From: Callorhinchus milii
Taxonomy: Eukaryota
Reading direction: 5' to 3'
Length of the DNA stretch: 64,000 bases
Assembly (NCBI RefSeq): GCF_018977255.1
Contig: NW_024704754.1
Coordinates: 14,012,001 to 14,076,000, forward strand
The notes under the pieces are model-generated. The model saw only the letters and a program-made list of their open reading frames with translations. It was not told the DNA's origin and did not search any database. The position numbers were made by a program, and so were the translations under genes. Of this stretch, positions 77 to 29,382 are shown one piece after another (within the stretch, counting starts at the first letter, position 1; every line of letters begins with the position of its first letter).

Positions 77-3000
77 GTAAGGCTGTTTCACCCTTTACCA
101 CCATTATCTCTCTGCTTTAGATCAGTGGTAATCACTAACCATGTGCAAGAGCTTTTCCCAGGAACCCTCTGTCACCATGAAGTGATGGGCTTTGAGGCAG
201 ATCCTGATTCCCATAGAGAGAGCTTCTGGGCAGGTGAGACATAGTAATAACAACAACAACCACAACAACTTGCATATATATAGTACCCCTCATGCCAGGT
301 AGCGACCCAAAGCACTTGACAATGGTGAAGCACGATGCTGAGCCGGGGGGGTGGGGGAGGTGACCGTAGGCACGGTCAAAGAGAAGGTCTTCTGGTGCGA
401 TCTGAAGATGGGGAGGAAGGGGGTAAGGTGGAGGGATAGAGGAAGAGTGTTCCAGAGATTTTGGGCACAGTAGCTAAAAGAACGTCCACTGATGGTGGAA
501 CAGGAGCGACATGCAATTGGCCAGAGCCAGTCAAGTGGAGGCAGCGGGTAATGGGTTGAGGAGTAAGCAGGTCGGAGAAGTAGGGAAGTGGCAGAGTACG
601 AGGAGATTTGAAAACAAGTGTAAGTATCTTGAAATCATTCAGCGTTAAGGAGCCAGTGGTGATTGGCTAGTAGTAATATGTGGTAAACACACAATATGGA
701 ACTCGTGCAACTATGAGGACCCAGGACATTAGCATTTTGGCTCATGGGATTGACAGCATGTCTATGGCAACATGTTTCAATGATGAGCCATGTAGACTAT
801 TTAACTTGGTTTCCTCAAGAGTTGTTTATCTTACCAGAATAAATTCTGCCCCAGGGGCCCCTCCATTCATCTCTCCTCTTCCGCACCTCTGGTTCTGAGG
901 ACTTCATTTTAAACATACAATACAATACAAAATCACATTTGTATAGCACCTTTCACATAAAATATTACTCAAGTTATAGATGAAAACTAAGTGAGTCACT
1001 ATGATACAAACCAGATACTTCTCATCCCAAGTTAATTGATTGAACTACCTAAAACACTTTTTGGGGGGGTCAGCTGGATATCTGACACTTGCAGAAATCC
1101 AACACTGTGCTTAAGTGTATCTAAACCAAACTGAGATATCCATGCATCCCACTTACACATGGAAATACCAGAGATACATTGTGGAATGGACTGTATATTA
1201 TTGCCCTGGAGGAACGCATCCTGCTTACCTAATTCCAGAAAGTTTTGGGAACACGTTGTCAAGAGCCAAGGCTTGGGGATGCCAGAGTGCGCATTGGGGT
1301 ACATCTGCAGTCTAACTACATAGCTTGTCATTGATATCATTGTCTGGCTAGGGTCACACTACCGGTTAGGGCATTGGCTTGCAGTGTTAACAGGAGCTTA
1401 GTGGGATGATGCCCTGCCCCCAGTGACTGGTCTGCCCTTCCAAGTCCTGCAGATGAGCCAGACTGGCTGTGCTTCCATCAGCAGTGCCCTGGAATACGGA
1501 GGATTAACCTGACTCAGGAACCTGGCTTCTGAGACTGCCGCAGAGGATTGGCTCAATTCTAACATTTCATTACCAAACAGATCCTATTTTCCTTCCCTCC
1601 CAATAGAATAATCACTAGTTGGTCATTTGACATCCGCCAAGTGGGGGTTGGAGCCCTCACTAGGTGGATGGTAGCTACCAGGAACACCCTGTGAGCTTCC
1701 CTGTGGGCCACACATCTCAGCTGGATAATTATAGTGGACACTCGGACCTCAGGGAGGAAGCTGAGGAGGGAACCTGAGCTTTTTTAAAGAGGTGAGGAAG
1801 TCCCCCCCCATCCCTATGACTGGGGCTGGACTGACTCCATGGTTTGATGGTTAGAGCCGGTGGGGGAGGGGGGTATTATAAGAGGGGTGTCAGGTTCTGC
1901 CCATGTGCCCAAGTGTCTGCACCCCTCTGTGATTGTTGTGTTGCTGTTCCAGATTCTTCCTCCCCCACCACCCCCCCCAGATGTGTTATAGTGAGAATCT
2001 ACATGAGCGGCTGTTTCTGCCTGACTGGGGGATGGTGGGGGGGAGGTTTGCACTACAATATTAAGTTGAGGGTCTCACAGGCTAAGATGGGGTGGAATGT
2101 CAGGCTTCTGACATCTTAAATACATTTAGTGTAAGTATACATATTACATGTGTTAGACGAGGACATTAATGTTTCCCAATCTTCCCAATGAAGGGGACGG
2201 GGCAGAGAGACCCCACTGACAGGTATTCCCCAGTCAACCAGTACCAGAGTCACACACAGTAAGTCAGTCAGTCTGTTTTCTCTCCCACAGGTTCCGCCCA
2301 TCAATGGAGTGTTACGCTTCCCGAGTCCACTGCTGGGCTGGAGGGAGAGTCTGTAATTCTGGATTGTTCTTTCAGTTACCCTGACCCACCGAATAAACCA
2401 TATACTATATGGGGCCAATGGTTCAAAGGTAATCCATGCAATGAAAGAGCAGAGAAGATATATGAAAGCAACGAAAGCAACAACAGAATAAAATTAACAG
2501 GAAACCTGACAAAGAAAAACTGCTCAATTGAGATAAGTGACCTCAGGAAAACTGATACTGGTCATTACTGCTTCAGGTTTGAAATACCGGGTTTCGATAA
2601 ATGGACCGGAAAACTATCCATCAGTGTCGATGTGTACGGTAAATATTCCTTCTCACTTCTTGTTACCTGTTTGAAAAACCAGCAAACTGACAAGTTTGCA
2701 GTATTTACCGTTGTCGATTTGATGAGGTGACATTTCAGAACATTGTTTATTTCTCTTTCCTTTTGTCAGATCGTCCTGGCAACCCCACTGTTTTCCCAAG
2801 TGAAGTGGCTGAAGGGATCAGCACCACTTTAACGTGTACTTCGTCTAACGTTGTAACACAGGTCAAACCCAAGCTGACCTGGGAAGGAATCACTGAGCTG
2901 ACAGATCAGAAGACCGTGAATAAGGAGAAACAGTCTTTATCTGACCGGAAAATCACCAGTTCATTCACTTTTGTTCCATCATACCAACATCATCTCAAGC

Positions 3001-6000
3001 TGATCAAATGTGTGGTCAGTTGTGCTAACTACCAATGCTCAAAACAAAGCAACATAACGCTTCAGGTCAAATGTAAGTTCCCCATACTGAAGCAATGACA
3101 CAAAACTCGGAGGAAGTTTCAACACAGAGGTTGACATTAAAAAAATGCAGCAAGACATAGATAGGTTAGGTGATTGGGTAGGTAGGTGGCAGATGAAGTA
3201 TAACGTAGGGAAGTGCGAAGTCATCCACCTAGGTAGCAAAAACAGTAGAGCGGGTTATTTTTTAGAAGGGGAGAGATTGGAATGCGTTAGCGTCCAGAGG
3301 GACTTGGGTGTCCTTGTACACCAATCACAGAAAGTTAGTCTGCAGGTGCAGCAGCAATTAGGAAGCCGAACGGTATGTTAGCATTCGTTATGAAAGGATT
3401 AGAGTATAAGAGTAGGGAAGTCTTGCTGCAACTGTATAGGGCCCTGGTGAGACCACAACTGGAATACTGTGTGCAGCTTTGGTCTCCTTATTTAAGGAAG
3501 GATGTACTTATCTTGGAGGGGGTGCAGCGTAGATTTACCAGGTTAGTACCAGGGATGAAGGGGATGAGTTGCGAGGATAGGCTGACCAATTTAGGCCTAT
3601 ATTCTCTAGAATATAGAAGAATTAGAGGGGATATTATAGAAACCTGTAAGATCATCAAAGGGCGTGATAGAGTAGATAGTGGGAGATTGTTTCCCCCGGT
3701 TGGAGAAACTAAAACAACCTTAAAATTAGAGGCAGCCCTTTCGCACTGAGTTGAGGAAGAACTTCTTCACTCAAAGGGTGGTGAATGTATGGAACTCACT
3801 ACATGGGTGAAAAGCAATATGGGGATAAGGCAGGGTCAGGTTATTAACTGGAGTTAGATTAGAAGATCAGCCATGATTGAATGGCTGGGCAGGCTCAAAG
3901 GGCCGAATGGCCTACTCCTCCTAAATGTTATGTTATGTTAATCAACATTCAAATGATCCTAAACTGTACAGAAAGTTGTCAAGAGCTTTTGTACTGGTTC
4001 CATTCTACCACCCGACCTGTCTTTGCCCAATTACCTATATTGGCTCCACACCCTCAGGGATACAGGGCAGCAACATTTTGCTTCCAAGTCCCTTCTGATA
4101 ACTCTAAAGCTGGAGGGACTGAACTTGCCCAGGGGGAAACTGAAAGTGATATAGGAGCGTTATTGACTCATTTCTCACTATGCCAAATCAGTGTAAGGCA
4201 GCAATAAACAAGGCCAACAGGATGTTGGGCTTCATTACTAAATCAGTTGAGATCCTCAGAAGTTTACTGAGGATCTCAACTGATTTAGTAATAGGCTCTG
4301 GTCAGGCCGCTCATTGAATACTGTATAGAGTTCTTGTCAACGCGACAGAAGGGGACTGTCCAGGCCTTAGAGACAGAGCAGAGGTGAGCAATGAGCTTGA
4401 TCCCCAAGCGATAGAGGAATGAGCTATTAGACAAGCTGTGGTTCTTCAGTCTTGAGGGAAAGCAAATCAGAGACTACATATTTTTCAATGGGATTGAGAA
4501 AGTAAACCCAGATCAATATTTCAGAATATATCAAGACAATAAAACAAGAGGATATAAATTTAGAGTAATAAAGGGACATGACAGGAGAGATACCAGGAAG
4601 ATTTTCTTCACCCAGAGAATAATCAATGACAGGAAAGGTGGTAGAGGCCAGGATACTGGACTCTTTTAAAAAGCTACTTGATGCAATGATGAGGAGAATG
4701 GTAGGGTGAGGGTTCTGGAAGAATCAGATCAGATGGGCCAAACAACCTGTATCGTCCACACCAATCATGTGAGATCAAATCATTTCTCTCTCTTGAAATA
4801 ACTCTGGGCCTAAGCAAGCCCCTAATATAATGTCACCCCCAACAGTGTCTGTACCAAGACAGGTGTGTTAAAGGAATTTCTATCATGGAACAAAGTATTT
4901 GATTTGATGTTTGTCTTGCTAATGGGTAGGTTATATAGGTCATGGGGGGCCTCAAAATTAGGCTACCCAATACGTAAAATGTTCATTTTTAGCCTGGGAG
5001 AACACAGATATTGCCCTCCTTGTGTGTGTTTTTATAATAATAATAATCCTTGCATTTGATGTAGCACTTTTCACGTCTTCTAGACGTCTAAAAACACTTC
5101 ACAGAACATACTGTAAGTGAATTGACTGTATATTTGTGGGAGAAAAAACAAAAAAACAAGCTAAGAACCAATTAAGGGACTGCAAAATATTAATGTGCTA
5201 ATTTCCAAATGCAATCAAAGATGGTAATAAATTTGTATGAAAAAGGAGCCCATTTACTGGGAGGGATGTGCTGCCATCTGATGGTCATTTTCACTCAGGC
5301 AAGTCAGCAAAACCCAAACTTAAATAAAATCCTAAACTTTACCCTGAAGCCTCAAAAGTTCCAACAAGCAACAAATTAACTCAAAGAGAATGAACAGGTG
5401 ATAAGAAACATATTAAATACTTACTTCCTGGAGGTACTTACTAGGGAGGACACTATACAATGCCCTACCAACATCCAGCAAACTTTGCTTGAACTCTGGG
5501 ACTTGAATATAAGTGAGGCTGAGATTCTAGAGATGCTCAAGAGGCTCAAAACCAACAGATCCCCTGGGATGGATGGTACCTCTCCATACTTGCAGAGACA
5601 AGACAACACTGACAGATACTGTGAGAGAGTCAATCACTATGGGGGAGGTTCCAATGCACTGGAACAATGTAAACTGAACTCCCGATAATAAAACACTGTC
5701 TATTATCAACACATGGCTTAGATTACCAAGATGTCAATATCCCGGTTGCTTACCACACAATTCTCTCCCATTTCAGATGCCCCCCGAAATACAACAATTC
5801 AAATAAATGAACCTCTGGATATCATTGAGGGGAGTGAAAATGTGACGCTGACGTGCAGCACTGACAGCTACCCTCAAGCTACTCACACCTGGTACAAGAC
5901 GAAAAGACACACAAACACAACACAAACTCTGAACAGTACAGGCAGCGTCTTGTTGTTCAAAACAATATCCAGAATGGATTTCGGAACCTTTACCTGTGTG

Positions 6001-9000
6001 GTAAATAATTCACAGGGAAATGACACCTCTGCAGCTGACATCAATGTCAAGTGTAAGTATTTGGCTTTAACGGATCCTGAGTGGATTATATCACGTTAGA
6101 GTGAGGGCTCTTCTCGCACTTGATGTTTACAGTGGGAGCCGTGTAAGCCAGACATCGGAGACGGCCGTATTGACCGGCATAAGGGTCTGAGGTTAACCGA
6201 AATGACTTCCAACCCCCAGCAGAAGAGCAGCGCTTTCTCACTCCCATTGACATTCCCATGACATTCGGATGGAAAAGGGATCAATTAGCGGCAGCGCTGA
6301 GGTGATTGACAGCCCATTCACAAGCGGCTGCCGGCTGACAATCGCAACTTCCCTCCCTTATTCTTCCCCATTCCTCCACCTCCTCACTGATCGACAGCCC
6401 AACTCAGCCGCTGCTGAATGGCTGGAGTTCACTGATAATCCCCAGTGTTAGAGGATTGAACTATGAGCAATGAATAGGTTAAGCTAAGGCTCTTCAGTCC
6501 TGAGAGAAAATACCTCATAGAGGACTTTAAACAGGTGTTGCAAATGTTAAGTCAGATTGAAAAAGTAAACCCAGAACAATACTTTAGGATTAACCAAATA
6601 ATAGAATATAGTATAATAATAATCCATGCATTTGATATAGTGCCTCATCACGTTGTTGAGACGTCTCAAAGCGTTTCACAGAACATATATTGTAAAGTGG
6701 GTTGACTGTGTATTTTGTGGCCGAACGGCGGCAGCCAATTGCGCACAGCAGTGTCCCACAAACAGTCATGGATTGAGTGGCCAAATTATTATTATTTTCT
6801 AAAGGAATTATTACTCCTGGAAAGAACAATAGGATTGAGGTTTTGCATTATGAAGGGCAATTGCAACGTGATTGTCAGAATTTGTCTGGGAGTGTTCATA
6901 ATCACTGCTCCCTTTACCTTATGCCTTCAGGAGATGAGCTCCTCCATGTGTCTCCGCATCTCTATCACAAGCCTACAAGCTCTGGGTTGTTACTGGAGCT
7001 GCGATATACTCGTGGAGGATTGAGGGAGAGAAGGGAGTGAGATTAGGATCGTGACCTTGACACAGTGACATTGACGAGCTCCTCCCTAGATTATATTGTA
7101 CTGATCTACAATTCTCTCCCATTTCAGATGCCCCACGAAATACAACAATTCAAATAAATGAACCTCTGGATATCATTGAGGGGAGAGAAAATGTGACGCT
7201 GACGTGCAGCACTGACTGCTACCCTCAAGCTACTCACACCTGGTACAAGACAAAAAGACACACAAACACAACACAAACTCTGAACAGTACAGGCAGCGTC
7301 TTGTTGTTCAAAACAATATCCAGAATGGATTCCGGAACCTTTACCTGTGTGGTAAATAATTCACAGGGAAATGACACCTCTGCAGCTGACATCAATGTCA
7401 AGTGTGAGTATTTGGCTTTAACGGCACCTGAGTGGATTATCCGCCGTCAGAGTGAGAGCTCTTCTTGCTCTTGATCTGTGCGGTGCGAGCCGGTTAAACC
7501 AGACATATTGGGGATGACCCTATTGTCCGGCCTAAGAGGCGTCCGAGGTTAACCGACATAGCTTCCCACCCAGCAGAGGAACAGCTCTTCCTCTCTCCCA
7601 TTGACGTTCCCATCGGACAGAAATGGGACCAATTAGGGGCAGCGCTAAGGTGATTAACAGCCCATTCACAAGCGGCTGCCGACTGTCAAACAATCGCAAT
7701 TTACCTCCATTATCCTTCCCCATTCCTCCACCTCCTCACTGATCGACAGCCCAACTCCAGCCGCTGCTGAATGGCTGGAGTTCACTGATAATCCCCAGTG
7801 TTAGAGAATTGAACTATGAGCAATGAATAGGTTAAGTTAAGGCTCTTCAGTCCTGAGACAAAATACCTCATAGAGGACTTTAAACAGGTGTAGCAAATGT
7901 TAAATCAGATTGAAAAAGTAAACCCCGAACAATATTTTAGGATTAACCAAATAGTAGAATATAGTATAATAATAAGCCTTGCATTTGATATAGCGCCTCA
8001 TCACATTGTTGAGACGTCTCCAAGAGCTTCACAAACCATATAATGTAAAGTGGGTTGACTGTGTATTTTGTGGGCGAATGGCAGCAGCCAACTGCGGACA
8101 ATAGTGTCCCACATACAGTGATGCATTCAGTGGCCAAATTATTATTATTTTTTAAAGGACTTATTACTCCTGGAAAGAACAATAGGATTGAGGTTTTGCA
8201 TTATGAAGGGCAATTACATCGTGATTGTCAGAATTTGTCTGGGCGTGTTCATAACAACTGTTTCCATTACCTATGCCTTCAGGAGATGCGCTCCTCCATG
8301 TGTCTCCGCATCTCTATCACAAGCCTGCAAGCTCTGGGTTGTTACTGGAGCTGCGATATACTCGTGGAGGATTGAGGGAGAGAAAGGAGTGAGATTGGGA
8401 TTGTGACCTTGACACAGTGACGTTGACGAGCTCCTCCCGAGATTATACGGTTCTGATCTACAATTCTCTCCCATTTCAGATCCCCCCCGAAATACAACAA
8501 TTCAAATAAATAAACCTCTGGATATCATTGAGGGGAGAGAAAATGTGACGCTGACGTGCAGCACTGACAGCTACCCTCAAGCTACTCACACCTGGTACAA
8601 GACAAAAAGACACACAAACACAACACAAACTCTGAACAGTACAGGCAGCGTCTTGTTGTTCAAAACAATATCCAGAATGGATTCCGGAACCTTTACCTGT
8701 GTGGTAAATAATTCACAGGGAAATGACACTTCTGCAGCTGACATCAATGTCAAGTGTAAGTATTTGGCTTTAACGGATCCTGAGTGGATTATATCACGTT
8801 AGAGTGAGGGCTCTTCTCGCACTTGATGTTTACAGTGGGAGCCGTGTAAGTCAGACATATCGCGGACGGCTGTTTTGTCCGGCCTAAGGGGCGTCCAAGG
8901 TTAACCGACATTGCTTCCCACCCAGCAGAGGAGCAGCGCTTCCTCCCTCCCATTGACATTCCCATCGGAAGAAAAAGGGACCAATTAGTGGCAGCGCTAC

Positions 9001-12000
9001 GGTGATTAACAGCCCATTCACAAGCAGCTGCCGACTGTCAATCAATCGCAATTTCCCTCCCTTATTCTTCCCCATTCCTCCACCTCCTCACTGATCGACA
9101 GCCCAACTCCAGCCGCTGCTGAATGGCTGGAGTTCACTGATAATCCCCAGTGTTAGAGGATTGAACTATGAGCAATGAATAGGTTATGTTAAGGCTCTTC
9201 AGTCCTGAGACAAAATACCTCACAGAGGACTTTAAACAGGTGTAGCAAATGTTAAATCAGATTGAAAAAGTAAACGCAGAACAATACTTTAGGATTAACC
9301 AAACAGTCGAATATAGTATAATAATAATCCATGCATTTGATATAGTGCCTCATCACGTTGTTGAGACGTCCCAAAGCGTTTCACAGAACATATATTGTAA
9401 AGTGGGTTGACTGTGTATTTTGTGGGCGAATGGCAGCAGCCAACTGCGGACAATAGTGTCCCACAAACAGTGATGCCTTCAGTAGCCAAATTATTATTAT
9501 TTTCTAAAGGAATTATTACTCCTGGAAAGAAGAATAGGATTTAGGTTTTAGATTATGAAGGGCAATTGCATCGTGATAGTCAGAATTTGTCTGGGAGTGT
9601 TCATAATCACTGCTCCCTTTACCTTATGCCTTCAGGAGATGAGCTCCTCCATGTGTCTCCGCATCTCTATCACAAGCCTGCAAGCTCTGGGTTGTTACTG
9701 GAGCTGCGATATACTCGTGGAGGATTGAGGCAGAGAAGGGAGTGAGATTGGGATTGTGACCTTGACACAGTGACATTGACGAGCTCCTCCCTAGATTATA
9801 CAGTACTGATTTACAATTCTCTCCACATTTCAGATGCCCCCCGAAATACAACAATTCAAATAAATGAACCTCTGGATATCATTGAGGGGAGAGAAAATGT
9901 GACGCTGACGTGCAGCACTGACAGCTACCCTCAAGCTACTCACACCTGGTACAAGACGAAAAGAGACACAAACACAACACAAACTCTGAACAGTACAGGC
10001 AGCGTCTTGTTGTTCAAAACAATATCCAGAAGGGATTCCGGAACCTTTACCTGTGTGGTAAATAATTCACAGGGAAATGACACCGCTGCAGCTGACATCA
10101 ATGTCAAGTGTGAGTATTTGGCTTTAACGGCTCCTGAGTGGATTATACCACGTTAGAGTGAGGGCTCTTCTCGCTCTTGATGTTTACAGTGGGAGCCGTG
10201 TAAACCAGACATCGGGGACGGCTGTATTGTCAGCCTAAGGGGCGACCGAGGTTAACCGACATAGCTTCCCACCCAGCAGAGGAGCAGCGCTTCCTCCCTC
10301 CCATTGACATTCACATCGGAAGGAAAAGGAACCAGTTAGCGGCAGCGCTAAGGTGATTGACAGCACATTCACTGCTGCCGACTATCAATCAATCGAAATT
10401 TCCCTCCCTTATTCTTCCCCATTCCTCCACCTCCTCACTGATCGACAGCCCAACTCCAGCCGCTGGTGAATGGCTGGAGTTCACTGATAATCCCCAGTGT
10501 TAGAGGATTGAACTATGAGCAATGAATAGGTTAAGTTAAGGCTCTTCAGTCCTGAGAGAAAATGCCTCATAGAGGACTTGCAAATGTTAAATCAGATTGA
10601 AAAAGTAAACCCCGAACAATATTTTAGGATTAACCAAATAGTAGAATATAGTATAATAATAATCCATGCATTTGATATAGCGCCTCACCACGTTGTTGAG
10701 ACGTCTCCAAGCGCTTCACAAACCATATAATATAAAGTGGATTGACTTTGTATTTTGTGGGCGAATGGCAGCAGCCAACTGCGGACAATAGTGTCCCACA
10801 AACAGTGATGCCTTCAGTAGCCAAATTATTATTATTTTTTAAAGGAATTATTACTGCTGGAAAGAATAATAGGATTTTCGTTTTGAATTAAAAAAGGCGA
10901 ATGCATCGTGATTGTCAGAATTTGTCTGGGAGTGTTCATAACTACTGTTTCCATTACCTATGCCTTCAGGAGATGAGCTCCTCCATGTGTCTCCGCATCT
11001 CTATCACAAGCCTGCAAGCTCTGGGTTGTTACTGGAGCTGCGATATACTCGTGGAGGATTGAGGAGAGAAGGGAGTGAGATTGGGATTGTGACCTTGACA
11101 CAGTGTCATTGACGAGCTCCTCCCGAGATTATATTGTACTGATCTACAATTCTCTCCCATTTCAGATCCCCCCCGAAATACAACAATTCAAATAAATAAA
11201 CCTCTGGATATCATTGAGGGGAGAGAAAATGTGACGCTGACGTGCAGCACTGTCAGCTACCCTCAAGCTACTCACACCTGGTACAAGACAAAAAGTCACA
11301 CAAACACAACACAAACTCTGAACAGTACAGGCAGCGTCTTGTTGTTCAAAACAATATCCAGAATGGATTCCGGAACCTTTACCTGTGTGGTAAATAATTC
11401 ACAGGGAAATGACACTTCTGCAGCTGACATCAATGTCAAGTGTGAGTATTTGGCTTTAACGGCTCCTGAGTGGATTATACCACATTGGAGTGAGGGCTCT
11501 TCTCGGTCTTGATGTTTACAGTGGAACCCGTGTGAGCCAAACATCAGGGACGACCATATTATCTGGCCTAAGGGACATCCGTGATTAACTGAAATAACTT
11601 CCAACGCCCAGCAGAGGAGCAGCGCTTCCTCCCTACTATTGACGTTCCCTAAGGACGATAAAAGGACCATTTAGTGGCAGCGCTGAGGTGATTGACAGCC
11701 AATTCACAAGCGGCTGCCGGCTGTCAATCAATCGCAATTTCCCTCCCTTATTCTTCCCCGTTCCTCCACCTCCTCACTGATCGACAGCCCAACTCCAGCC
11801 GCTGCTGAATGGCTGGAGTTCACTGATCATCCCCAGTGTTAGAGGATTGAACTATGAGCAATGAATAGGTTAAGTTAAGGCTCTTCAGTCCTGAGAGAAA
11901 ATACCTCATAGAGGACTTTAAACAGGTGTATCAAATGTTAAATCAGATTGAAAAAGTAAACCCAGAACAATATTTTAGGATTAACCAAATAGTAGAATAT

Positions 12001-15000
12001 AGTATAATAATAATCTTTGCATTTGATATAGTGCCTCATCACGTTGTTGAGACATCTCAAAGCGTTTCACAGAAGATATATTGTAAAGGGGGTTGACTGT
12101 GTATTTTGTGGCCGAATCGCAGCAGCCAATTGTGGACAGCAGTGTCCCACAAACAGTCGTGGATTGAGTGGCCAAATTATTATTATTTTTTAAAGGAATT
12201 ATTTATTACTCCTGGAAAGAACAACAGGATTGAGGTTTTGCATTATGAAGGGCAATTGCAACGTGATTGTCAGAATTTGTCTGGGAGTGTTCATAATCAC
12301 TGCTCCCTTTACCTTATGCCTTCAGGAGATGAGCTCCTCCATGTGTCTCCGCATCTCTATCACAAGCCTGGAAGCTCTGGGTTGTTACTGGAGCTGCGAT
12401 ATACTCGTGGAGGATTGAGGGAGAGAAGGGAGTGAGATTAGCATTGTGACTTTGACACAGTGTCATTGACGAGCTCCTCCCTAGATTATATTGTACTGAT
12501 CTACAATTCTCTCCCATTTCAGATGCCCCACAAAATACAACAATTCAAATAAATAAACCTCTGGATATCATTGAGGGGAGAGAAAATGTGACGCTGACGT
12601 GCAGCACTGACAGCTATCCTCAAGCTACTCACACCTGGTACAAGACAAAAAGACACACAAACACAACACAAACTCTGAAAAGTACAGGCAGCGTCTTGTT
12701 GTTCAAAACAATATCCAGAAGGGATTTCGGAACCTTTACCTGTGTGGTAAATAATTCACAGGGAAATGACACCTCTGCAGCTGACATCAATGTCAAGTGT
12801 GAGTATTTGGCTTTAACGGCACCTGAGTGGATTATACCACGTTAGAGTGAGAGCTCTTCTCGCTCTTGATGTATACAGTGGGAGACGATTAAGTCAGACA
12901 TATCGGGGATGGCCGTTTTGTCCGGCCTAAGAGGCGTCCGAGATTAACCGAAATACAATCTTAATTAACCAAACAGGACACCAATTATTTTAATCTGGGA
13001 GTTAGTGTTACAATCCTGGACTCTCACAGAATTCAGTGAAATATATTAACTTTGTTTGGCTGCAAATTACCTTCCTGCCCAGCAGAGGAGCAGCACTTCC
13101 TCCCTCCCATTGCCGTTCCCATTGGAAGGGAAGGCGATCAATTAACCGACATAGTTAATGCAGGTAAGTGTACAAATGAATCGGGGCCAAGATTTTTTTT
13201 CAATTTTCCCATTGTTTGGGGTTAACCGGCAGTTAAGCAGATTTCTGGTCTTAGGAGCCGAGGGAAAAGGCTGAAAATCAGCGGAGAGGAAAAAATGTGA
13301 TTTGAATGTTTGTTAATTTCCACTTACAGATGGACCCAGTGAAATTAACATAAGTCAAAATGGGCTGAATTACAAGTGTGTCACAGACGCCAACCCTCCA
13401 GCAACCATCATTTGGAATCTAACTGAATCGATGACAAAGAAAACTTCCCAAATCCATGAAAATAAGTCTACGAACAGCCTGGAAGTGCAAGGATTAGAAA
13501 GCTTCTGTGTTTCATGTCGAGCTGAGAATGAATATGGTCGTGTGTATTCAAGGGAAAGTTGCTCAATGTCAAAACAGAGTAAGTAACTGAGTTATTTATT
13601 AAACAGTTTAATTGGAGGTCAGCAAAAATTGTGTAGGTCATTCAGTGGCATAGTTAAGGTAGGCTCACCTTGAGGATCTGAAAGAATTGTGGCAACATAC
13701 CTCACTATATTTCAGTTTCACTCCTGTCTAATTTCTAATAGGATTCCATATTAAGAAATCCTGTTAGAATTCTCAAAGACCCAGTGAAAACCACTCTGGA
13801 ATTGAATCCAGTTGGATTTCCCATGAGCTTGTGTGCCTTATTTCCAATTAATGAAAGGAGTCTTCACTTGCAAACCTCAGATTGCTTACTAAATAAATTT
13901 TGTTAAAAAATCTTCAACTTAGACCTATACATTTACTGTATTTATGGGCTATGTCAATAGATCACTGTCATTTGCTAAACTGCTGAAAATTAAGATTTGT
14001 CTACAGTTATCATCCCAGTGAATTCTTCAGTCTAATGTTTCTAAAATTCTCCCTTCCCCAACTCAGCAAGCATCCTTACTCTTTGTCCAGGTGTCATCTT
14101 GTAACAAGATTGTTAGCCATCTTGTCCCTGGATTCCATATTGTTATTCAAGTTCACATTTCTTGTCAAATCTAGTAATTGCTTTGATAGGCAAACGTAGT
14201 GGCCATTTTGTGCCTATCAAGTTCCCATCAAGTGCCCATGTGGTGAACAATCAATTTATCTGGAAGATTATTGGAGTGACACTTCCTTCTCCCTTCTAAC
14301 GGTGCATATCCCATTCCAGATACCAGGAAATGTCCATGTGTAGGAGTCATACATATGTAGGTCTCTCATTTGAGTCAGATACTAAACATGGATATGGGTT
14401 TCCACGTATGTCAGACACCGGGACGATCAGAAATAATTCCTGTGTACTTTGTGCAACAAGTACCATTGATGACAGTTCCCAAAAGAAATGACATCAGTGG
14501 CGCTTCTTATGCCTCACATGGAAAGTGCATAATTAGTGACCTGATGACCTGGAAGTTGGCCATTTTATGCACTTTTGCTTATAATATCTTTGTCAAGATT
14601 ATCAGACTCAGAGAATTGTGTTAGTACAGTGTTGTCTCATATTAATCTGTAAATATATAATAATAATCCTTAGAATCTTATTGCTAAACAGCTTTGATAT
14701 AATTGCGTTGATCAGAACTATTTGAATCTTTATGTTGGCAGGTTGGTCAGCAATACGGCAATTAATATTTGTTGGAATCGGAGTTATTGTCGTCTTCATC
14801 CTTCTCTTGACTGTGGTGCTAGTGTACTGCATAAAACAACTAAACCAAAGTAAGTCCTCTTCTGTGCCAATGTTACAGATCCCAGTGCAATATCTGATGA
14901 AACCCATACATACCCAGACCGCACTTCAATTCTGCTCAACCAAAGTGGTAGCTTGGATTAGTTGTTTACGTTATAAAATTCTGGGTTCAACCCCACATTG

Positions 15001-18000
15001 AAAACACAGTAATAACTCCACTTATGATTATTATTGTTATTATTAATAATATTATTATTATTATCTGTTATAACATTATTATTATATTAATATTATTATT
15101 ATTATCACAAACATGGTCTGTGCTGTGTATGGCCAAAATAATAATAATAATTTGTTCACTAAATCCACGATTGTTTGTGGGACACTGCTGTGAGCAATTG
15201 GCTGCCGCGATTCTCCCACAAAATATACAATCAATTCACTTTACAGTATATTCTGTGAGGTACTTTGAGACATCTCAGAAACATGATTAGCGCTATATCA
15301 AAAAATGCAAGAATTATTATTAATAATAATCCTTACATTTGGTATAGCTTTTCATGTCATTATAAAACAGCTACCGATAATCTGGGCACAGTTCCCAGTA
15401 ACAATCATAAGGCAAAATGAAGTGCAGAACCATCCAAAATAACTACAATGGTGTTTTACTTTCCTGCACATTGCTTTGTTTCTAGTGCTTGATCAATCTT
15501 AAAATAAAGTACCAATCATTTCCTTTTGTATTCCATCAGGGAAACAGATGGAAAATGATTCCCAAGCCATGATGCTCCATGAATTTCCAAATTCCATTCA
15601 GGTTTGTGAAGATGTTACTAATTTTAATTGTTAAACAATTGAGATGGATTCTCTCTCTCAGTGGCTCAGAGCGAAATGCAATTTTGGTGTATCACCAAAC
15701 CAGGTAACAGTCACCCTTTTCCTGTTTTTCTTTGGGGTCTGTGCTGAATTATCAGTGAGTGAAGCACTATGATTGGCCTTAGGACGAGCAAGATAATAAA
15801 ATAAACTGAGAATGGCTGTACAAGACTGTGATAGGATATTGAAACATTATAGAAATTGTCAAACAACAATAATTTGTACCTTTCACATCGGGAAGATGTC
15901 TCAAAATCCTTCACACAATTGACGGAGTCAAAGCTTGGGGTGGGTGCTGATCAAATGCAAAGAAAGGTGACTGAAAACAAGATCAAAGAGACAGGACGTT
16001 AGGGGAATTTGAAGGCACAGAGGGAGGGGGAAAGGCAGGTGGACTCTGTAATAGAATTTCAGAGAGTAGGGCAGTCCTAAAGGCTCACCCACCAATAGTG
16101 GATAGGGAGCGGGCAGAAGACATGACACAGACTCAGTGGTTGAAGCAGTAGGATCACAGTTTGTCATGGAAGTAAACTGAAGGAAGGACGTGGAGGTATT
16201 TGAATGTGAGGATAAGATTCTTGATTCACGAGGAGATGTGAAGCCAGTGAACACCTGTGAGGCTGGGGGTGATGTATTCACAGTGTCTGGTGCAGGAGAG
16301 GACCTGCACTATATGTCTGATATCAGCAGCTTGAGTACAGAGGATCTGGGGTGTTCAGTGAATAAAGCATTGGAGTAGATGAAGGCATGAATGAGGGTCG
16401 AAGCAGCTTGGGGGGAGAAATAGTGGCAGTGGCGGGCAACATGAGCGCTCCAGCCATTTTATAAGTGGATTCAGCTGTCAATCAATTACAATTTGAATCC
16501 TCCCATTCCCTCACTTGTTTCTTCCCCATTCCTCCACCCCCTCACTGATTGATAGCCCAACTTCAGTCACTTGTGAATGGCTGGAGTCCGCTGTCAATCA
16601 GTTACAATTTGACTCCTCCCATCTGTATCCTGGAGCCTCTCGTGGCTGAACAAGCCGCTTGAGACACAGAAGGCGCGAGTGAGTATATTCAGCAGCGACA
16701 AGCACGGCATTTTGTCCGGATTAACTGGATTGTTGTACAAATTAAACAGCGTATTTAAATCGGATACAAATGATTCGCGGCCGGATGTTTTGTCCAATTT
16801 ACCCGGCATCCGAGTTAACTGGCGTCTGGTTAAAATGGCTTCCACTGTATTACTAAAAGTGGGGTGGTAGGTTCAGAAAGCTATCAAGAAGTCAAATGGG
16901 ATTCTGAGTAAAACAAAGTGGGTACGTTATGTTGTAACTGTATAGGATATTGGTTAGTTTGCAGTTGGTGTACAGTGTTCAATTTTGGACTTCCCATTAT
17001 AGGATTCAGCTGGAGGATATCAGGTATGAAGCATTATACATATGAAGAGCAGCTGGGTAAACTGGGGGCTTTTTTCACCAGAACAAGAAGAAGAGTTTCA
17101 GAGATTCAGGGAGACGTTATAATGATATCTTCTATACAGTTTTTAAGCCATTACCAACTCTGGAAATCTCTGCCTGAATCTCTACATCTTTCCTCCTCCT
17201 TGTCCACGTTCAGATTACACCACAAGAACTTTATCTTCAACCAGTCACCTCCCTCTCTCCCTGGTTCGTCATCAAGCTCCACTAATGTTAAGCACTCAGA
17301 GACGCTACCGAGGATGAAGGGCATTATTTCAGTGCAGAGTGTTGTTGATAAAGTCTGGTATTCATTAACACAAGTGGCCCTTGAGGCTCAATTTGTAAAC
17401 CAAGAACAACCACAACTTGCAATTATATACTGCCCTCAAAACGAGGGTTTTGGCTGCATTTGGGGCACAGTACAGTCGGACATGTATCAGAGATGGAAGA
17501 AAGTGGTCCTGGTCAGGGACTGGATGTGGGGGAGGAAGTACAGTTGGGGTTTGAATTGGATGCCTAGGATGCGCACAGGTTCAGTGAGTCTGAGGGAGAG
17601 CCCAAGGAGGTTGAGGAGTTTAGATCCACTGGATTGAAGAAGTTGATGATAGTCAAGGAGTATGGTTTCCGTCTTGTTCATATTTAGCTGTAGAATTGTT
17701 CAGAAGGGAAGTAGGTATGCACCTGAGCAATGAAATCATTAAGGGAGAAAGAGCTGGAAATTGAGAATAATTTTCAAAACGGGGCAAGTTAGAGAAAAAA
17801 GTAACAATGTGACAGAGACACAAAATGCCTATTTTGTATTTCCCTGTGAAGAAGGATTGTAATTATTATGCTGTTTGCAGGATCACCGGTTGATTGAGCA
17901 GGACAACAAGCACAAAGAAGATTGTGGGTATGAAAATTTCATAGATAGTTCGGAATCAGCTAACGAGAACCTTGGAGACAATTCGCTGCATGATTCCTGC

Positions 18001-21000
18001 ATCCCCGACAAGCCAGAGCAATCCAAAGCAGCCAAACCAGATGAGGAAGAATGCATATATAGTAACATAAAGGTGAATCAACAACAACAACCAAAACAAC
18101 TTTCTTTATATTGTGCCCTTCATGTGGGACAGTTTCTCGGGCGCTTAACAGTGGCGAAGCCTAACCCTGAGCCGGGGGAAGGAGGATGTGACCATCAGTA
18201 CGGTCGAAGAGGAATGTCTTCTGTTGTGATCTAAAAGAGGGAAAGGAGAGGGCAAAGTGGAGGGAATGGGCAGAGAGTTCCAAAGCTTTGAGTGTAGTGA
18301 CTGAAAGTGCATCCACCGATGGTGGAACAGAGGGGACGAGGGACAAGCAGGCGGCCAGAGCCAGCCAAGAGGAGGCAATGGGCAGTGGATTGGGGAGAAA
18401 GCGAGTTGGAAAGGTGGGGAGGTGCCGGTGGGTGAAGGANTTTTTAGATGAGTGAGAGGATCTCAAAAGCAATCCGTTCTATGACAATGAGCTCGTGGAG
18501 CCCGATGAGCACTGGTGAGATGAGTGTATGAGTTTAGTGTTCATGAGAATACAGTTCTGGTCCCCATTTTATAGAAAGGATATAGAGGCACTGGAGAAGG
18601 TGCAAAGGAGATTTACTAGGATGATACTGGAACTGAGAGGTCATATCAACAAGCTTGGACACATTTCTCTTGAAAGCAGAAGGGATAGGGGTGACCCAAT
18701 AGAGGTCTTTAAAATGATGAAAGGTTTTGATAGGGTAGACACAGAGAAGATGTTTCCACTTGTGGGGGGATCAAAACCAGGGGCCATCAAAGTAAAATAG
18801 TCACCAATAAATTAAATAGTGAATTCAGAAGAAACTTCTTTACCCAGAGAGTGGTGGGAATGTGGAACTTCTAGGAGTAGTTGAGGCAAATGGCATTGAT
18901 GCATTATTGCTGTTAATCAATTGCAATTTAATTACTCCCATTCCCTCCCTTGTTTCTTCCCCGTTCCTCCAACCCCTCAATGATTGACAGCTCAACTCCA
19001 GCCTCTTGTGAATGGCTGGAGTGCGCTGTCAATCAATCACAATTGGACTCCTCCCATCTGTATCCTGGAGCCTCTTGTGGCTGAATGAAGCCACTCGAGA
19101 CACAGAAAGTTCGATTGAGTACATTCAGAAGCTACCAGCGTGGCATGTTGTCTGGATTAACCAGATTATTGTAAGAATTAAACCGGATACAAATGAATCT
19201 GGGCCGGGTGTTTTGTCCAATTTACCCGGCTTTCAGGTTAACCAGTGTCTGGTTAAAATAGCTTCCACTTTATTACTAAAAGTGGGGTGGCAGGTGCAGA
19301 AAGTTATCAAGATGCCAAATGGGATTCTGAGTAAAACAAAGTGGGTAAGTTATGTTGTAAATGTGTAGGACATTGGTTAGATTGCAGTTGGAGTATAGTG
19401 TTTAATTTTGGGCTTCCCATTATGGGATTCATTACGGGATGATACCAGGAATGAAACAATAGCAGGAGCAGGAGGCCAGTGCCGGTCGAGCAGAAGCGCT
19501 GAGTGGCGGATTGGGGACTGAGAAGGTCGGAGAGGTAGGTAGGTACCAGAGAGTGAATGGATTTGAACACAAGAGTGAGCATCTTGATGTCGATCTGTTC
19601 GGTGATGGGGAGCCACTGGAGCCTGGTCAGATGTGGGTACAGAGCTTGATCTGGGTCAGTATGTGGGCAGCAGAGTTTTGGATCAGCTGGATATTGTGAA
19701 TGGTGGAGCTGGGGAGCCCAGCGAGAACCCAGGGAGGTTGAGGCGTTTAGATCCACAGGAGTGAAGACGTTGATGATAGCCAAAGAGTATGGCTTCCGTC
19801 TTGTCCATATTCAGCTGTAGAATTGTTCAGAAGGGAAGTAGATATGCACCTGAGCAATGAAAACATTGAGGGAGAAAGAGCTGAAAATTGAGAATAATTT
19901 TCAAAACGGGGCAAGTTAGAGAAAAAGGTAGCAGTGTGACAGAGACATAACATGTCTATTTTGTATTTCCCTGTGAAGAAGGATTGTAATTATTATGCTG
20001 TTCACAGGATGAGGAGGACAACAAGCACAAGGAAGATTGTGGGTATGAAAATTTCAAGGATGGATCGGAACCGGCTAAGGAGAAGCTTGGAGACAATTTG
20101 CTGCATGATTCCTGCATCCCCGACAAGCCAGAGCATTCCAAAGCAGCCAAACCAGATGAGGAAGAATGCATATATAGTAACATAGAGGTGAATCAACAAC
20201 AACAACAACAACATCTTGCTTCATCTAGCGCCCTTCATGCGGGGCAGTGTCTCTGAGCGCTTAACAGTGGCGAACCCTAACGCTGAGCCAGGTGGAAGGA
20301 GGAGGTGACCATCAGTACAGTCAAAGAGGAATGTTTCCTGTTGTGATCTAAAAGAGGGAAAGGAGAGGGCAAAGTGGAGGGAATGGGCAGAGAGTTCCAA
20401 AGCTTTGGCTGTAGTGACTGAAAGTTAGGCCACCGATGATTTTGCAGAGGGGACGAGGGACAAGCAGGCGGCCAGAGCCAGCCAGGAGGAGTGAACGGGT
20501 AGTATATTGGGGAGAAAGCGGGTCGGAAAGATGGAGAGGTGCCAGCGGGTGAAGAGTTTTGCAGGTGGTGAGAGGATCTTGAACTGAATCCATTCTCTAC
20601 AGTGAGCTAATGGAGCCTGACGAGCACTGGTGAGATGAGCGTATGAGTTTAGTGTGCATGAGAATAGAGTTCTGGTCCCAATTTTATAGAAAGGATATAG
20701 AGATTTTCAAGGATGATACTGGAACTGAGAGGTTATATCCATCAGAAAAGGTTGAACAAGCTTAGACACTTTTCTCTTGAAAAGAGAAGGGTGAGGTGTG
20801 ACCTAATCCAGGTCTTTAAAATTATGAAAGGTTTTTATAGGGTAGAGAAGAGACATAGAGAAGATGTTTCCACTTGTGGGGGAGACTGAAACCAGGGGCC
20901 ATGAATGTAAAATAGTCGCCAATAAATCAAATCGAGAAGTCAGAAAAAAACGCCTTTACCCAGAGAGTGGTGGGAATGTGGAACTTGCTTCCACAAGGAG

Positions 21001-21943
21001 TAGTTGAGGTGAATTGCACAGATGAATTTAAGGGGAAGCTAGATAAGTACATGAGGGAGAAAGGAATAGAAAGTTATGCTGATAGGCTTAGTTGAGGAAT
21101 GGCAGGAGGAGGCTCATGTGGAACATAAAGACCGGCATAGACCAGTTGAGCCAAACGGCCTGTTTTTGTGCTGTATAATCTATGTAATATGGACAGCAGA
21201 GTTCTGAATCAATTGTGGTTTGTGGGTAGTGGAGCTGTACAGACTGATGAGGAGGGCATTGGAACAATCAAGGGGGTGGTGACGAATGCATGTACGAGGG
21301 TTTTGGCTGCATTGGGGGTGAGGTACTGTCAGAGGTGTGCAATGTGATGGAGGTGGAGGAAAGTGGTCTTAGTTAGGGACCAGATGTGTGACAGGAATGA
21401 CACCTGGGGTTTACGTACAGGTTTGGTAAGTCTTAGGAAGTGACGAGTGAGGTTGATGAGGTCAGAGCTGCAGGAGAGAAGACGTTGACGGAAGCCAAGG
21501 AGTGTGGCTTCCATCTTGTTGACGTTCAGTTGGATAGTATCCTGAAGTCGTCCTCCTTCTCAAGCAATTAGTTCATTTTTCAAACAATTCGTGGACTCTT
21601 TCTCCACAGTAGTTTGTGGCAGAAAATTCTGTATTCTGACCATCCTGCGTGTGAAGAAATCTATTTTATCCTCCCCTTTAATAACCGTTTTTGACCTCAC
21701 ATCAACATAAATTCTAACAATCACTCTATTATGATTAACCAGCCAAAAGAAATGCATGGAGGTGCTGAGCCGGAGGAGGAGTGCATGCAGCCAGAAGTGA
21801 ACGCATCTCAGATAGCTGACAAGAGGGATTCTGAAGCCAGTTTGGTGTACGCTTCCATATGTTTTACTAAACAGCCGGAGGCACTGAAACCAGCAGAAGA
21901 TGACTCAGAGAAAATTATTTATTCCAGTTTGCGGGTAAAATAG
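25..21943 (+). CDS. Siglec/CD22-like inhibitory Ig-superfamily receptor A, 15 coding exons, about 1116 aa
   Basis: join(25-76,2291-2638,2770-3072,5777-6052,7128-7403,8480-8755,9834-10109,11166-11441,12523-12798,13330-13578,14742-14849,15540-15601,17881-18072,20008-20187,21743-21943) = 3351 nt. All introns are GT-AG, phases are compatible and there is no internal stop. Architecture is signal-V-C2-(C2)x6-Ig-TM-Tyr motif tail. Confidence 0.85.
245..660 (-). mobile_element. L2-type LINE 3' fragment
   Basis: (CAA)n tail and similarity to the 3' end of the L2 at 30535-31845. Confidence 0.6.
2291..2638 (+). CDS. Receptor A V-set (Siglec-type) exon
   Basis: cacag|GT...TACG|gtaaat, 348 nt. Translation [76 protein letters not shown]- and E-strand Cys and the F-strand Arg (AGG 2575-2577) match Siglec D1. 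Confidence 0.9.
2770..3072 (+). CDS. Receptor A C2-type Ig exon (D2)
   Basis: tgtcag|AT..AAAT|gtaagt, 303 nt. [41 protein letters not shown]. Confidence 0.9.
3095..3945 (+). mobile_element. 5'-truncated CR1 LINE, present in arm A only
   Basis: Translates to the CR1 RT C-terminus (WQMKYNVGKCEVIHLG, LYRALVRPQLEYCVQLWSP, EGVQRRFTRLVPG) with frameshifts. Has a (TTATG)n tail. The site is empty in B near 52705. Confidence 0.9.
4200..4770 (+). mobile_element. Degraded CR1 3' fragment, shared with arm B
   Basis: CR1-like motifs gccaacaggatgttgggcttcatt and attttcttcacccagaga. Confidence 0.7.
4234..4292. repeat. Perfect 26-bp inverted repeat with a 7-nt loop
   Basis: attactaaatcagttgagatcctcag-aagttta-ctgaggatctcaactgatttagtaat. 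Confidence 0.95.
5170..5700 (+). mobile_element. Degraded CR1 ORF2 fragment
   Basis: Translation ILNTYFLEV..ISEAEILEMLKRLKTNRSPGMDG resembles the CR1 LK..KSPGPDG region. Confidence 0.65.
5777..6052 (+). CDS. Receptor A repeated C2 Ig exon 1
   Basis: 276 nt, phase 1/1. [41 protein letters not shown]. Confidence 0.9.
7128..7403 (+). CDS. Receptor A repeated C2 Ig exon 2
   Basis: 276 nt with intact splice sites. Carries an extra Cys (TDCYP). Confidence 0.88.
8480..8755 (+). CDS. Receptor A repeated C2 Ig exon 3
   Basis: 276 nt, intact splice sites, open frame. Confidence 0.88.
9834..10109 (+). CDS. Receptor A repeated C2 Ig exon 4
   Basis: 276 nt, intact splice sites, open frame. Confidence 0.88.
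11166..11441 (+). CDS. Receptor A repeated C2 Ig exon 5
   Basis: 276 nt, intact splice sites, open frame. Confidence 0.88.
12523..12798 (+). CDS. Receptor A repeated C2 Ig exon 6
   Basis: 276 nt, intact splice sites, open frame. Confidence 0.88.
13330..13578 (+). CDS. Receptor A membrane-proximal Ig exon
   Basis: ttacag|AT..CAGA|gtaagt, 249 nt. [39 protein letters not shown] (C..ANPPA..W..C.AEN.YG pattern). Confidence 0.88.
14742..14849 (+). CDS. Receptor A transmembrane exon
   Basis: ggcag|GT..CAAA|gtaagt, 108 nt. [36 protein letters not shown], with no charged residue in the hydrophobic core. Confidence 0.88.
15540..15601 (+). CDS. Receptor A first cytoplasmic exon
   Basis: catcag|G..CAG|gtttgt, 62 nt, phase 1 to 0. 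[21 protein letters not shown]. Also conserved in receptor B. Confidence 0.8.
17881..18072 (+). CDS. Receptor A cytoplasmic Tyr exon copy 1 (YENF, YSNI)
   Basis: tttgcag|GAT..AAG|gtgaat, 192 nt, phase 0/0. Confidence 0.8.
18510..18900 (+). mobile_element. CR1 3' fragment
   Basis: QFWSPFYRKDIEALEKVQRRFTRMI motif. A second copy lies at about 20630-21185. Confidence 0.8.
20008..20187 (+). CDS. Receptor A cytoplasmic Tyr exon copy 2 (YENF, YSNI)
   Basis: tcacag|GAT..GAG|gtgaat, 180 nt, phase 0/0. Paralogous to 17881-18072. Confidence 0.8.
21743..21943 (+). CDS. Receptor A terminal exon with two ITIMs (LVYASI, IIYSSL)
   Basis: Open frame to TAG at 21941-21943, with AATAAA at 21948-21953. The acceptor (aaccag) is weak, so the exact start is less certain. 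Confidence 0.8.
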   Translation, partial: PKEMHGGAEPEEECMQPEVNASQIADKRDSEASLVYASICFTKQPEALKPAEDDSEKIIYSSLRVK

Positions 21944-24740: not shown

Positions 24741-25096
24741 TAATAATAATCCTTGCATTTGATATAGCGCCTTATCACGTCTTCGAGCGCTTCACAGAAT
24801 ATGCTGTAGAGTGAATTGACTGCATATTTTGTGGGCAAAACGTGGCAGCCAATTGCGCATAGCAGTGTCCTACAAACTGTCGTGGATTGAGCAACCAATA
24901 TATTATTTTTTTTAAGGAATTATTACCCCTGGAAAAGCGATCTGCCAATCGATTAACAACCAGGTTCCTAATTACTGCTAGGTTAACAGAGGCACATGAA
25001 GTAAGGAAACTTGCCCAAAGTTTCGCCCTGCTGGGAATCGAACCCAGGTCTCTCGCATGTGAGGCGAGTGCTCTAACCACTGAGCTACAAGACTCC
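24741..25096 (-). mobile_element. Full-length tRNA-derived SINE
   Basis: Head with A box (TAGCTCAGTGG) and B box (GGTTCGATTCC), and tail ..gcgctatatcaaatgcaagg(ATT)n. Confidence 0.88.
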
Positions 25097-28700: not shown

Positions 28701-29342
28701 ACAGAGCTGAAGGAGCACTGCACTGTTGGACTTGTCCTTTGGATGAGGCTTTAAACCAGTGTTATCTGCCTGTTCATTAAAGATGGGCATTAAAGATCTC
28801 ATTATACTACAACATGAACCCCCTTGATCCAGATAGATATAAACACACACAGCGATTCTCAGCTAAAACAACACACGGGTTTAACTTCTCCAGGGAGGAA
28901 CCCACAACAACAACTGCAACACAATAAGGTAACCGCGAAGGAAGAGTTCAGGCAACTGGGTTCAAGGTTGGTGCCTGCAACCTGTCTTACCATCATGTGA
29001 CTCGCAATCCCCCACTCTAAACCTTAACCAACTTCAGACCAGCCACATGGCCTGGATCTCATATTCCCTGGGCCTCGACCGAGGCCTTCTCAGAGCCGAG
29101 CACTTACACACACACACACAGAGTGATGGTAACCTCTTTAGGAAGGCACAGGCTCTGCTCTTCGAGCCTCAATTTCTCAACTGTCCCTTTCGCTTCCCTC
29201 TCTGTCTCTCTCATCCTCTCACTTTTATTCTCTCTCATACTCTCTCTGATTCATTCTCTCACTCTCTTTGTCTCTCTCTCACTCACTCACTCTCAACCTC
29301 TCACCCTCACTCTTGCTCTCCCTCATTCTCTCTCTCTCTCTA

Positions 29343-29382
<40 letters not shown>

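Follow-up and report, generated by a model that had tools for sequence, protein, structure and literature searches.

The stretch analyzed here, hereafter the window, comprises 64,000 nucleotides of the chimaera Callorhinchus milii (NCBI RefSeq assembly GCF_018977255.1, contig NW_024704754.1, positions 14,012,001 to 14,076,000 of the forward strand), and all coordinates below count from its first letter. On its plus strand, a single gene contains six near-identical immunoglobulin (Ig) exons, arranged head-to-tail in a tandem repeat of about 1.35 kb that extends from 5757 to 13150. The gene has the features of a Siglec-family inhibitory receptor, and the array is probably an old tandem amplification of one Ig-domain exon that has been maintained by selection. 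An intragenic array of tandem exons in a receptor gene had already been correctly recognized, at 5757-12950, in a first-pass annotation made from the letters alone. Its left end stands, with homology beginning about 20 bp 5' of exon 1, but its right end is too short: a 130-bp insert at 12955-13085 interrupts the homology, and unit-like sequence then resumes until about 13150.

The repeat exons and their introns

The array consists of five full exon-plus-intron units of 1351, 1352, 1354, 1332, and 1357 bp, with introns of about 1.08 kb, and of a partial sixth. Tandem Repeats Finder misses it, as the maximum period of this program is 500 bp, and the array was analyzed with BLAST and MAFFT. When unit 1 is compared to the window by BLAST, units 2-5 are 91.0-93.6% identical to it. 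Upstream of exon 1 there is no homology to the unit introns, except for an unrelated copy of a repeat resembling a short interspersed nuclear element (SINE), which is 79% identical. There are no runs of N within the array.

As the first-pass annotation had claimed, all six exons are intact and in phase 1/1. Each is 276 nt long, has an AG acceptor and a GT donor, contains no stop codon, and encodes a 92-residue Ig domain in which both Ig cysteines and the tryptophan are kept. The six domains are 92-98% identical to one another. Exon 1 (5777-6052) carries S19 and F69, exon 2 (7128-7403) carries C30, and exon 3 (8480-8755) carries PPR and K11, with exons 1 and 3 both having a gtaagt donor. Exon 4 (9834-10109) is characterized by D44, R67, and A84, exon 5 (11166-11441) by PPR, K11, V29, and S43, and exon 6 (12523-12798) by Q3, K11, K52, R67, and F69. 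Exons 3 and 5 are only 2 nt apart, and the remaining pairs differ by 5-10 nt. The variants reported earlier are all found (A/P at exons 3 and 5, E/K at exons 3, 5, and 6, M/R at exons 4 and 6, F/S at exons 1 and 6), and their mosaic assortment is confirmed by violation of the four-gamete test inside the exon.

The introns lie at 6053-7127 (intron 1, nearest to intron 5, with 94.9% identity), 7404-8479 (intron 2), 8756-9833 (intron 3), 10110-11165 (intron 4), and 11442-12522 (intron 5). The intron after exon 6 (12799-13329) begins with unit positions 277-432 (12799-12954), continues with the insert and the unit-like sequence up to about 13150, and is unique from there on.

The receptor

The spliced exons encode a type I receptor of 1116 residues, with a signal peptide, a V-set domain, a C2 domain, the six repeat domains, one further Ig domain, a transmembrane segment, and a cytoplasmic tail, making nine Ig domains in all. 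The exons outside the array, all on the plus strand, are those for the signal peptide (25-76, used in the older RefSeq model), the V-set domain (2291-2638), the C2-set domain 2 (2770-3072), the membrane-proximal Ig domain (13330-13578, orthologous to the final Ig domain of the ray proteins), and the transmembrane segment (14742-14849), followed by a short cytoplasmic exon (15540-15601), a tandem pair of cytoplasmic exons (17881-18072, with YENF and CIYSNI, and its duplicate at 20008-20187), and the last coding exon (21743-21943). The duplication of the cytoplasmic exon includes its flanks (16474-18200 compared to 18909-20317, 84-89% identical) and doubles the tyrosine motifs of the tail; both YENF/CIYSNI copies are present in the RefSeq models.

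Along 98% of its length, this model agrees at every residue (100% identity) with XP_042196009.1, named "hemicentin-1-like" in C. milii. RefSeq also has an earlier model of the gene, XP_007889617.1 ("B-cell receptor CD22-like"), presumably based on an assembly that was sequenced independently. Over 1099 residues the two models are colinear, and both splice all six repeats, within which they differ by one substitution, D44 of repeat 4 being V in the older model.

In Pfam, the protein matches V-set (7e-21), Ig_CD22 (5e-7), and six Ig repeats. Its nearest relatives with solved structures are MAG (2e-30), CD22, Siglec-8, and CD33; for CD22 and sialoadhesin, the sequence matches are to 5vkj and 1od7. 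The arginine of "HYCFRFE" in the V-set domain aligns with that of "KYYFRGD" in MAG (5lf5), which we take to be R118, so that the F-strand arginine of Siglecs appears to be present. The V-set intra-sheet disulfide is predicted as well, since the cysteines of "ILDCSF" and "KKNCSI" align with those of "IPCRF" and "LRNCTL" in MAG. Of the disulfides of Siglecs, the bond between domains 1 and 2 is missing: S and V occupy the positions of the cysteines of "EGTC" and "PDNC" in MAG, and the ray orthologs also lack these cysteines. The last coding exon carries LVYASI and IIYSSL, both of which fit the immunoreceptor tyrosine-based inhibitory motif (ITIM) [SILV]xYxx[ILV]. The tail also contains YENF twice and CIYSNI twice, the latter departing from the canonical motif at position -2.

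In a tree built from the first 250 residues, the chondrichthyan sequences form one clade (support 99/98) that branches in the same order as the species. It is separate from the clades of CD22 (91/85; tetrapod, gar, and catfish) and of sialoadhesin (100/98), so the gene does not group as a CD22 ortholog. Given this position, and with the deeper nodes lacking resolution, it is labeled a Siglec-family receptor, with no particular ortholog assigned. From its sequence features, then, the gene reads as a Siglec-family inhibitory receptor, and "hemicentin" is a misnomer. No published description was found in the literature on the elephant shark together with Siglec or CD22; the gene is already in public models, where it is misnamed.

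Alternation and mosaicism among the units

The first-pass annotation had described an ABABA pattern, in which introns 1, 3, and 5 share one pair of marker strings and introns 2 and 4 another. The four strings sit exactly where they were claimed to be. tcactgctccctttaccttatgcc begins at 6902, 9607, and 12297 (with one further copy on the minus strand at 50527) and aaagcgtttcacagaa at 6668, 9373, and 12059, in the three "A" introns, while actgtttccattacctatgcc begins at 8257 and 10944 and gcttcacaaaccatataat at 8026 and 10713, in the two "B" introns. None of the four matches a shuffled sequence. Like markers are 2687-2705 bp apart, in agreement with the period of about 2.7 kb given for them. However, the marker pairs are confined to two short patches (unit positions 865-914 and 1126-1149), and the sites with an A/B distribution cluster at 797-914 and 1126-1311, exactly at the marker positions, so the alternation is not unit-wide. 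The first patch is located inside the SINE-like repeat, of which the window holds at least 17 other copies. This interspersed repeat is present in every unit at about 833-1047 (e.g., 6609-6823), with one marker pair inside, and its other copies occur on both strands (e.g., 5033-5139, 15140-15322, 24740-24935, and 47127-47332).

Across the five full units there are 49 biallelic informative sites. The partition {2,4} vs. {1,3,5} accounts for 13 of them, a tie with {1,5} vs. {2,3,4}, also at 13. The pair {1,3} is found at six sites, {3,5} and {3,4} at four each, {2,5} and {2,3} at three each, and {1,2}, {1,4}, and {4,5} at one each. Units of the same parity are thus paired at 36 of the 49 sites, compared to the 40% expected, which gives p = 2e-6 if sites are independent; when consecutive like sites are counted once, the pairing is found in 18 of 31 runs (p = 0.03). 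Over whole units, mean identity is 93.9% at even lags vs. 92.6% at odd lags, a gap of 1.3 points. At least 18 events of recombination, conversion, or homoplasy are needed across the units (Rmin 18), and compatible sites are clustered (test of the pairwise homoplasy index type, P = 0.011).

The paralog described below allows the types to be polarized. B is the derived type, with eight sites in introns 2 and 4 and seven more in introns 2, 3, and 4. Type A is mostly ancestral: it has two shared derived sites, and its marker also occurs in the paralog. At unit positions 945-1090, intron 3 has a B-like state and three further derived sites in common with intron 4, which resembles a patch of conversion common to introns 2, 3, and 4. 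A maximum likelihood tree of the 3' 550 bp pairs introns 2 and 4 (98/97), has intron 3 as sister to this pair, and groups introns 1 and 5 with the paralog outgroup. With the paralog as root, B is a clade and A is not, and the two types are not both monophyletic. The first 155 nt of the intron tell another story, with the groups {1,3,4}, {2}, {5}, and {6 plus paralog}. There, the flanks of exons 1, 3, and 4 are 6.6-9.8% apart, and those of exons 2 and 5 are each 13-23% from all others.

Since introns 2 and 4 are sisters, an event linking non-adjacent units is needed. As read from these alignments, there is a genuine, though weak, period-2 signal, one or more events connected units two apart, and all units have become mosaics. 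The interpretation first proposed is consequently supported in part: the period-2 signal goes beyond chance and introns 2 and 4 are sisters, but a regular two-unit higher-order repeat appears to be an over-reading of two short marker patches.

The inverted paralog and the age of the array

An inverted paralog of the whole gene lies tail-to-tail with it on the minus strand (44073-54230). The two are 86-95% identical in the longer aligned blocks, and the paralog is modeled in RefSeq as a truncated 253-aa protein (XP_042196016.1, "MAG-like"). In its single repeat exon (50077-50322, minus strand), the first Cys has become Tyr, and an in-frame loss of 27 nt removes the second Cys. In its membrane-proximal Ig exon (49301-49569, minus strand), a 1-nt deletion leads to a stop codon and the donor GT is lost. 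The paralog contains no copy of the YENF/ITIM exon, and it is probably a pseudogene.

A relic of a second unit remains in the paralog at 51125-51312 (minus strand), where the flank that follows the exon is joined to the intron that precedes it. Its junction (ggggttaaccggc joined to tgccgactg) is different from that of the units in the first gene (caatta joined to g[ct]ggcagcgct), and two different unit junctions imply at least two duplication events with different breakpoints. Just upstream of the relic there is a deletion scar (gcatgaactt joined to tgtttggctg) with AACT(T) microhomology, where the sequence ahead of the array, which resembles a long interspersed nuclear element (LINE), meets the insert belonging to the penultimate unit. 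This scar points to one large non-homologous deletion in the paralog.

Among the array introns, mean divergence is 7.2-8.1%, with values reaching 22% in a CpG-rich stretch, while the introns of the paralog outside the array diverge from their counterparts by 3.7-6.7% (about 5%). In that same CpG-rich stretch, the flank of exon 6 is only 2.6% from the flank in the paralog, and exon 6 is the exon nearest to the paralog's repeat copy (97.0% over the exon plus 155 nt). The 130-bp insert is found after exon 6 and in both flanks in the paralog, and is absent from introns 1-5. Taken together, the intron divergence, the exon 6 flank, and the distribution of the insert indicate that most of the amplification predates the gene duplication, and, by these divergences, that the array is old.

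Orthologs in rays and sharks

The orthologs in rays and sharks, such as Mobula XP_072119674.1, Narcine XP_069755242.1, and those of Amblyraja and Hemiscyllium, belong to the same clade (99/98). RefSeq calls them "B-cell receptor CD22-like," "Siglec-10," or "MAG-like." They share the V-set domain, the C2 domain, the repeated Ig domains with YAP(K/R)N, the last domain with YKPxxxN, the transmembrane segment, and the ITIM tail, and in them, too, the middle domains were amplified lineage by lineage. In a tree of the domains, the six from C. milii form one clade (100/100), whose sister is the penultimate domain that Narcine and Mobula have in single copy. C. milii thus amplified the penultimate type to six copies, whereas rays amplified another, more distal domain type. 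At 1116-1144 aa, the C. milii protein is the longest in the chondrichthyan group examined.

Skates have d4 and d5 that are 95-96% identical. Mobula has four similar domains, in which d4-d6 (87%) and d3-d5 (82%) are closer than d4-d5 and d5-d6 (76-77%). This period-2 pattern of identity, along with the one- and two-domain isoforms in the Mobula and Amblyraja orthologs, suggests that amplification in pairs is a recurrent process in the family.

Isoforms that skip a single domain (90-94 aa) are annotated by RefSeq in five elasmobranch species: Amblyraja (947 vs. 855 aa), Mobula (932 vs. 843/841 aa), Hemiscyllium (761 vs. 667 aa), Chiloscyllium (764 vs. 670 aa), and Narcine (759 vs. 667 aa). One Mobula isoform lacks 180 residues, equivalent to two domains. 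Gnomon variants need transcript support, and these isoforms of the orthologs are still predictions. By contrast, C. milii has one annotated isoform, with all six exons. The suggestion in the first-pass annotation that receptor height may be tuned by exon skipping thus has indirect backing, from the orthologs.

Origin and growth of the array

We consider it likely that one Ig-domain exon in a Siglec-family inhibitory receptor gene was amplified in tandem long ago, and that selection has maintained the resulting array. Starting from the lone penultimate domain that rays still possess, the array would have arisen in the lineage of the chimaeras and grown by several duplications whose breakpoints differed. 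Units two apart would have been linked by one or more events or exchanges, leaving the weak period-2 signal, before gene conversion and intra-unit crossovers turned every unit into a mosaic. The amplification would have preceded the inverted duplication that created the neighboring paralog, which would then have lost all but one unit by microhomology-mediated deletion and would now be decaying, while the functional gene kept its six exons intact. That all six remained so while the paralog decayed argues that they are used, and exons diverge by 2.2% across units vs. 8.1% for introns. In this sense, the array would be an evolutionary accordion across species and paralogs.

Several observations weigh against this interpretation. 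The exons have 12 nonsynonymous and four synonymous variable sites, and with a ratio of the two rates (pN/pS) of about 0.73, their low divergence may owe as much to exon-centered conversion as to purifying selection. Divergence between the paralog intron upstream of its repeat exon and intron 5, which holds the corresponding position, reaches 10.6%. This exceeds the value of about 5% between the paralogs and implies either a later replacement of the unit in the first gene or a separate duplication in the second. No single duplication order fits all segments: dimer, 2.7-kb segment, and nested models were tried, and none accommodates the exon and the 5' and 3' parts of the intron together. Finally, the stalk function, the sialic acid binding, and the six-exon transcripts are predictions from gene models and analogy.

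Another possible, if more doubtful, history is that the units were added singly, with no dimer ever duplicated. The period-2 signal would then come from later conversion, mainly over a tract of about 500 bp in introns 2 and 4, and from retained ancestral states. This would account for the kinship of introns 2 and 4 being limited to the 3' 40% of the unit, as their 5' parts are 14.4% apart, and for the tight clustering of the diagnostic differences (six sites in 50 bp; four sites and an indel in 20 bp), which fits a few multi-base events. The pervasive recombination and the modest significance of the parity once linked runs are counted once are also in line with it. Yet same-parity sharing is found in several independent segments and pairs ({1,3} at unit positions 279-342, {3,5} in the exon, {2,6} at 8 and 299, {1,5} at 433-436, and elsewhere), and the Mobula ortholog has a comparable period-2 pattern and an isoform that lacks exactly two domains.

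It is unlikely that the six exons are alternative cassettes of which transcripts normally carry a subset, so that the working receptor would have fewer than nine domains and a length set by splicing. All six are symmetric and have near-identical splice sites, and isoforms shorter by one domain, or in Mobula also by two, are annotated in the elasmobranch orthologs. Moreover, two intron islands, at unit positions 601-650 and 1151-1250 (e.g., 6377-6426 and 6927-7026), are as conserved as exons, with a divergence of 0.8-2.4% compared to the 8% mean, in all five introns and relative to the paralog. A ~41-nt imperfect inverted repeat is found near them (unit positions ~563-603 and ~1235-1275). An RNA duplex formed by it was considered and rejected: its free energy is -43 to -51 kcal/mol, but this is little better than composition predicts (z only -1.1 to -3.1 compared to shuffled sequences), and no compensatory changes were seen in it. 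Against the cassettes, the two C. milii RefSeq models stem from separate annotation rounds and neither omits a repeat exon, and each exon remained intact over the period in which the paralog decayed. A search of the protein collection for transcript-derived C. milii fragments with exon-exon junctions gave only the RefSeq and Ensembl models and no proteins assembled from reads. The Ensembl model A0A4W3K8J6 was rejected as evidence for an isoform, as it trims exons and runs into intron 1.

The regular repeat of A-B dimers put forward at first, still turning over by unequal crossover and with a copy number that is polymorphic today, seems quite improbable. It does explain the exact alternation of the marker strings, the sister relation of introns 2 and 4, the same-parity pairing at 36 of 49 sites, and the 2-nt distance between exons 3 and 5. 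Nevertheless, the A/B sites are restricted to the two clusters, type A has only two shared derived sites, introns 1 and 5 group with the outgroup, and the first 155 nt of the introns are grouped quite differently. Nor is there any sign of present-day change in copy number: units are 5-9% apart, no two of them are less than about 5% apart, and the longest identical runs between units are 72-160 bp. The two assemblies available each have six units, in the same order and with one amino-acid difference in the repeats. The earlier statement that copy number is likely polymorphic therefore finds no support here.

As for an assembly artefact, whether a shorter array expanded or a longer one collapsed, nothing was found in its favor beyond tandem repeats being a known weak point of assemblies, and it is highly improbable given units that are 5-9% apart with 15-38 singletons each, an array free of N runs, and an older RefSeq model with the same six domains, order, and diagnostic residues.

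The proposed stalk and its parallels

The six repeat domains contain 35 N-glycosylation sequons, five or six per domain. From typical Ig dimensions, six tandem Ig domains add about 20-25 nm to an ectodomain. By analogy with CD22 and sialoadhesin, the six domains may form a rigid, glycan-coated stalk that sets the reach of the binding head from the membrane and with respect to the glycocalyx of the cell itself. A stalk that is tunable by splicing is a rather unlikely extension of this idea. In such a device, elephant shark immune cells would vary how many repeat exons they include and thereby set the reach of the head, and with it the engagement of cis vs. trans ligands, under the control of the intron islands and the inverted repeat, and would be common to the ray and shark orthologs.

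CD22 (Siglec-2) and sialoadhesin (Siglec-1) have the same type I layout, with a V-set head of the sialic acid-binding type on a rod of C2-type Ig domains (in the C. milii protein, binding is predicted), and in these receptors the number of domains is thought to set the reach beyond the glycocalyx. The tail of CD22 likewise combines ITIMs with a YxN (Grb2-type) motif. Unlike them, the C. milii gene falls outside both clades, its stalk domains are near-identical recent copies instead of anciently diverged ones, and the cysteines of the interdomain disulfide are absent.

The stalk of CEACAM5 (CEA), A1B1-A2B2-A3B3, was built from Ig C2 exons amplified in pairs and is the textbook case of a two-unit Ig repeat. 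Both are stalks of Ig-superfamily receptors made from amplified Ig C2 exons, but the A and B units of CEA differ over their full length, whereas here only two or three short intron patches alternate and the exons are not sorted by type. In the long homologous repeats of CR1 and in the kringle IV-2 repeats of LPA, near-identical units vary in number between individuals. The C. milii array resembles them in being made of intragenic, frame-keeping exon-plus-intron units whose number changes the length of the protein, but its units are 5-9% apart and two assemblies agree on six. The locus is thus a tandem amplification of an Ig exon in an Ig-superfamily receptor, of a known kind and involving no new mechanism.

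Its interest lies in being a clean and datable example of change in ectodomain length in Ig-superfamily receptors. The same gene has six copies of one domain in a chimaera and two to four of a different one in rays, with a paralog carrying a single crippled copy next door, and the breakpoints can still be read. The comparison also corrects three misleading public names of one gene family ("hemicentin-1-like," "CD22-like," and "MAG-like"), and delimits a Siglec clade of chondrichthyans in which the usual disulfide between domains is missing. Were stalk length regulated by splicing, the locus would offer a natural system for studying the reach of Siglecs and their engagement of cis vs. trans ligands.

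Neighboring features

The only neighbors of the gene in the window are the inverted paralog and an exon for the N-terminus of an Arf-family small GTPase (29387-29527, plus strand; Pfam PF00025, 8e-14), which is ARL3-like by eye. This exon sits between the two convergent Siglec-like genes, with a (CT)n microsatellite just upstream (29198-29381). LINE-like open reading frame (ORF) fragments at 3095-3945 and 5398-5756 resemble reverse transcriptase by eye, and the ORFs at 3375-3749 and 5398-5688 have no Pfam match. The paralog lacks the first fragment, which is an insertion, and shares part of the second, which directly adjoins the array on its left side. Finally, guanine-cytosine (GC) skew is of opposite sign over the repeat-rich introns of the two genes (+0.19 to +0.28 at 16000-22000 and -0.30 at 38000-40000), which probably reflects strand-biased transposon content.

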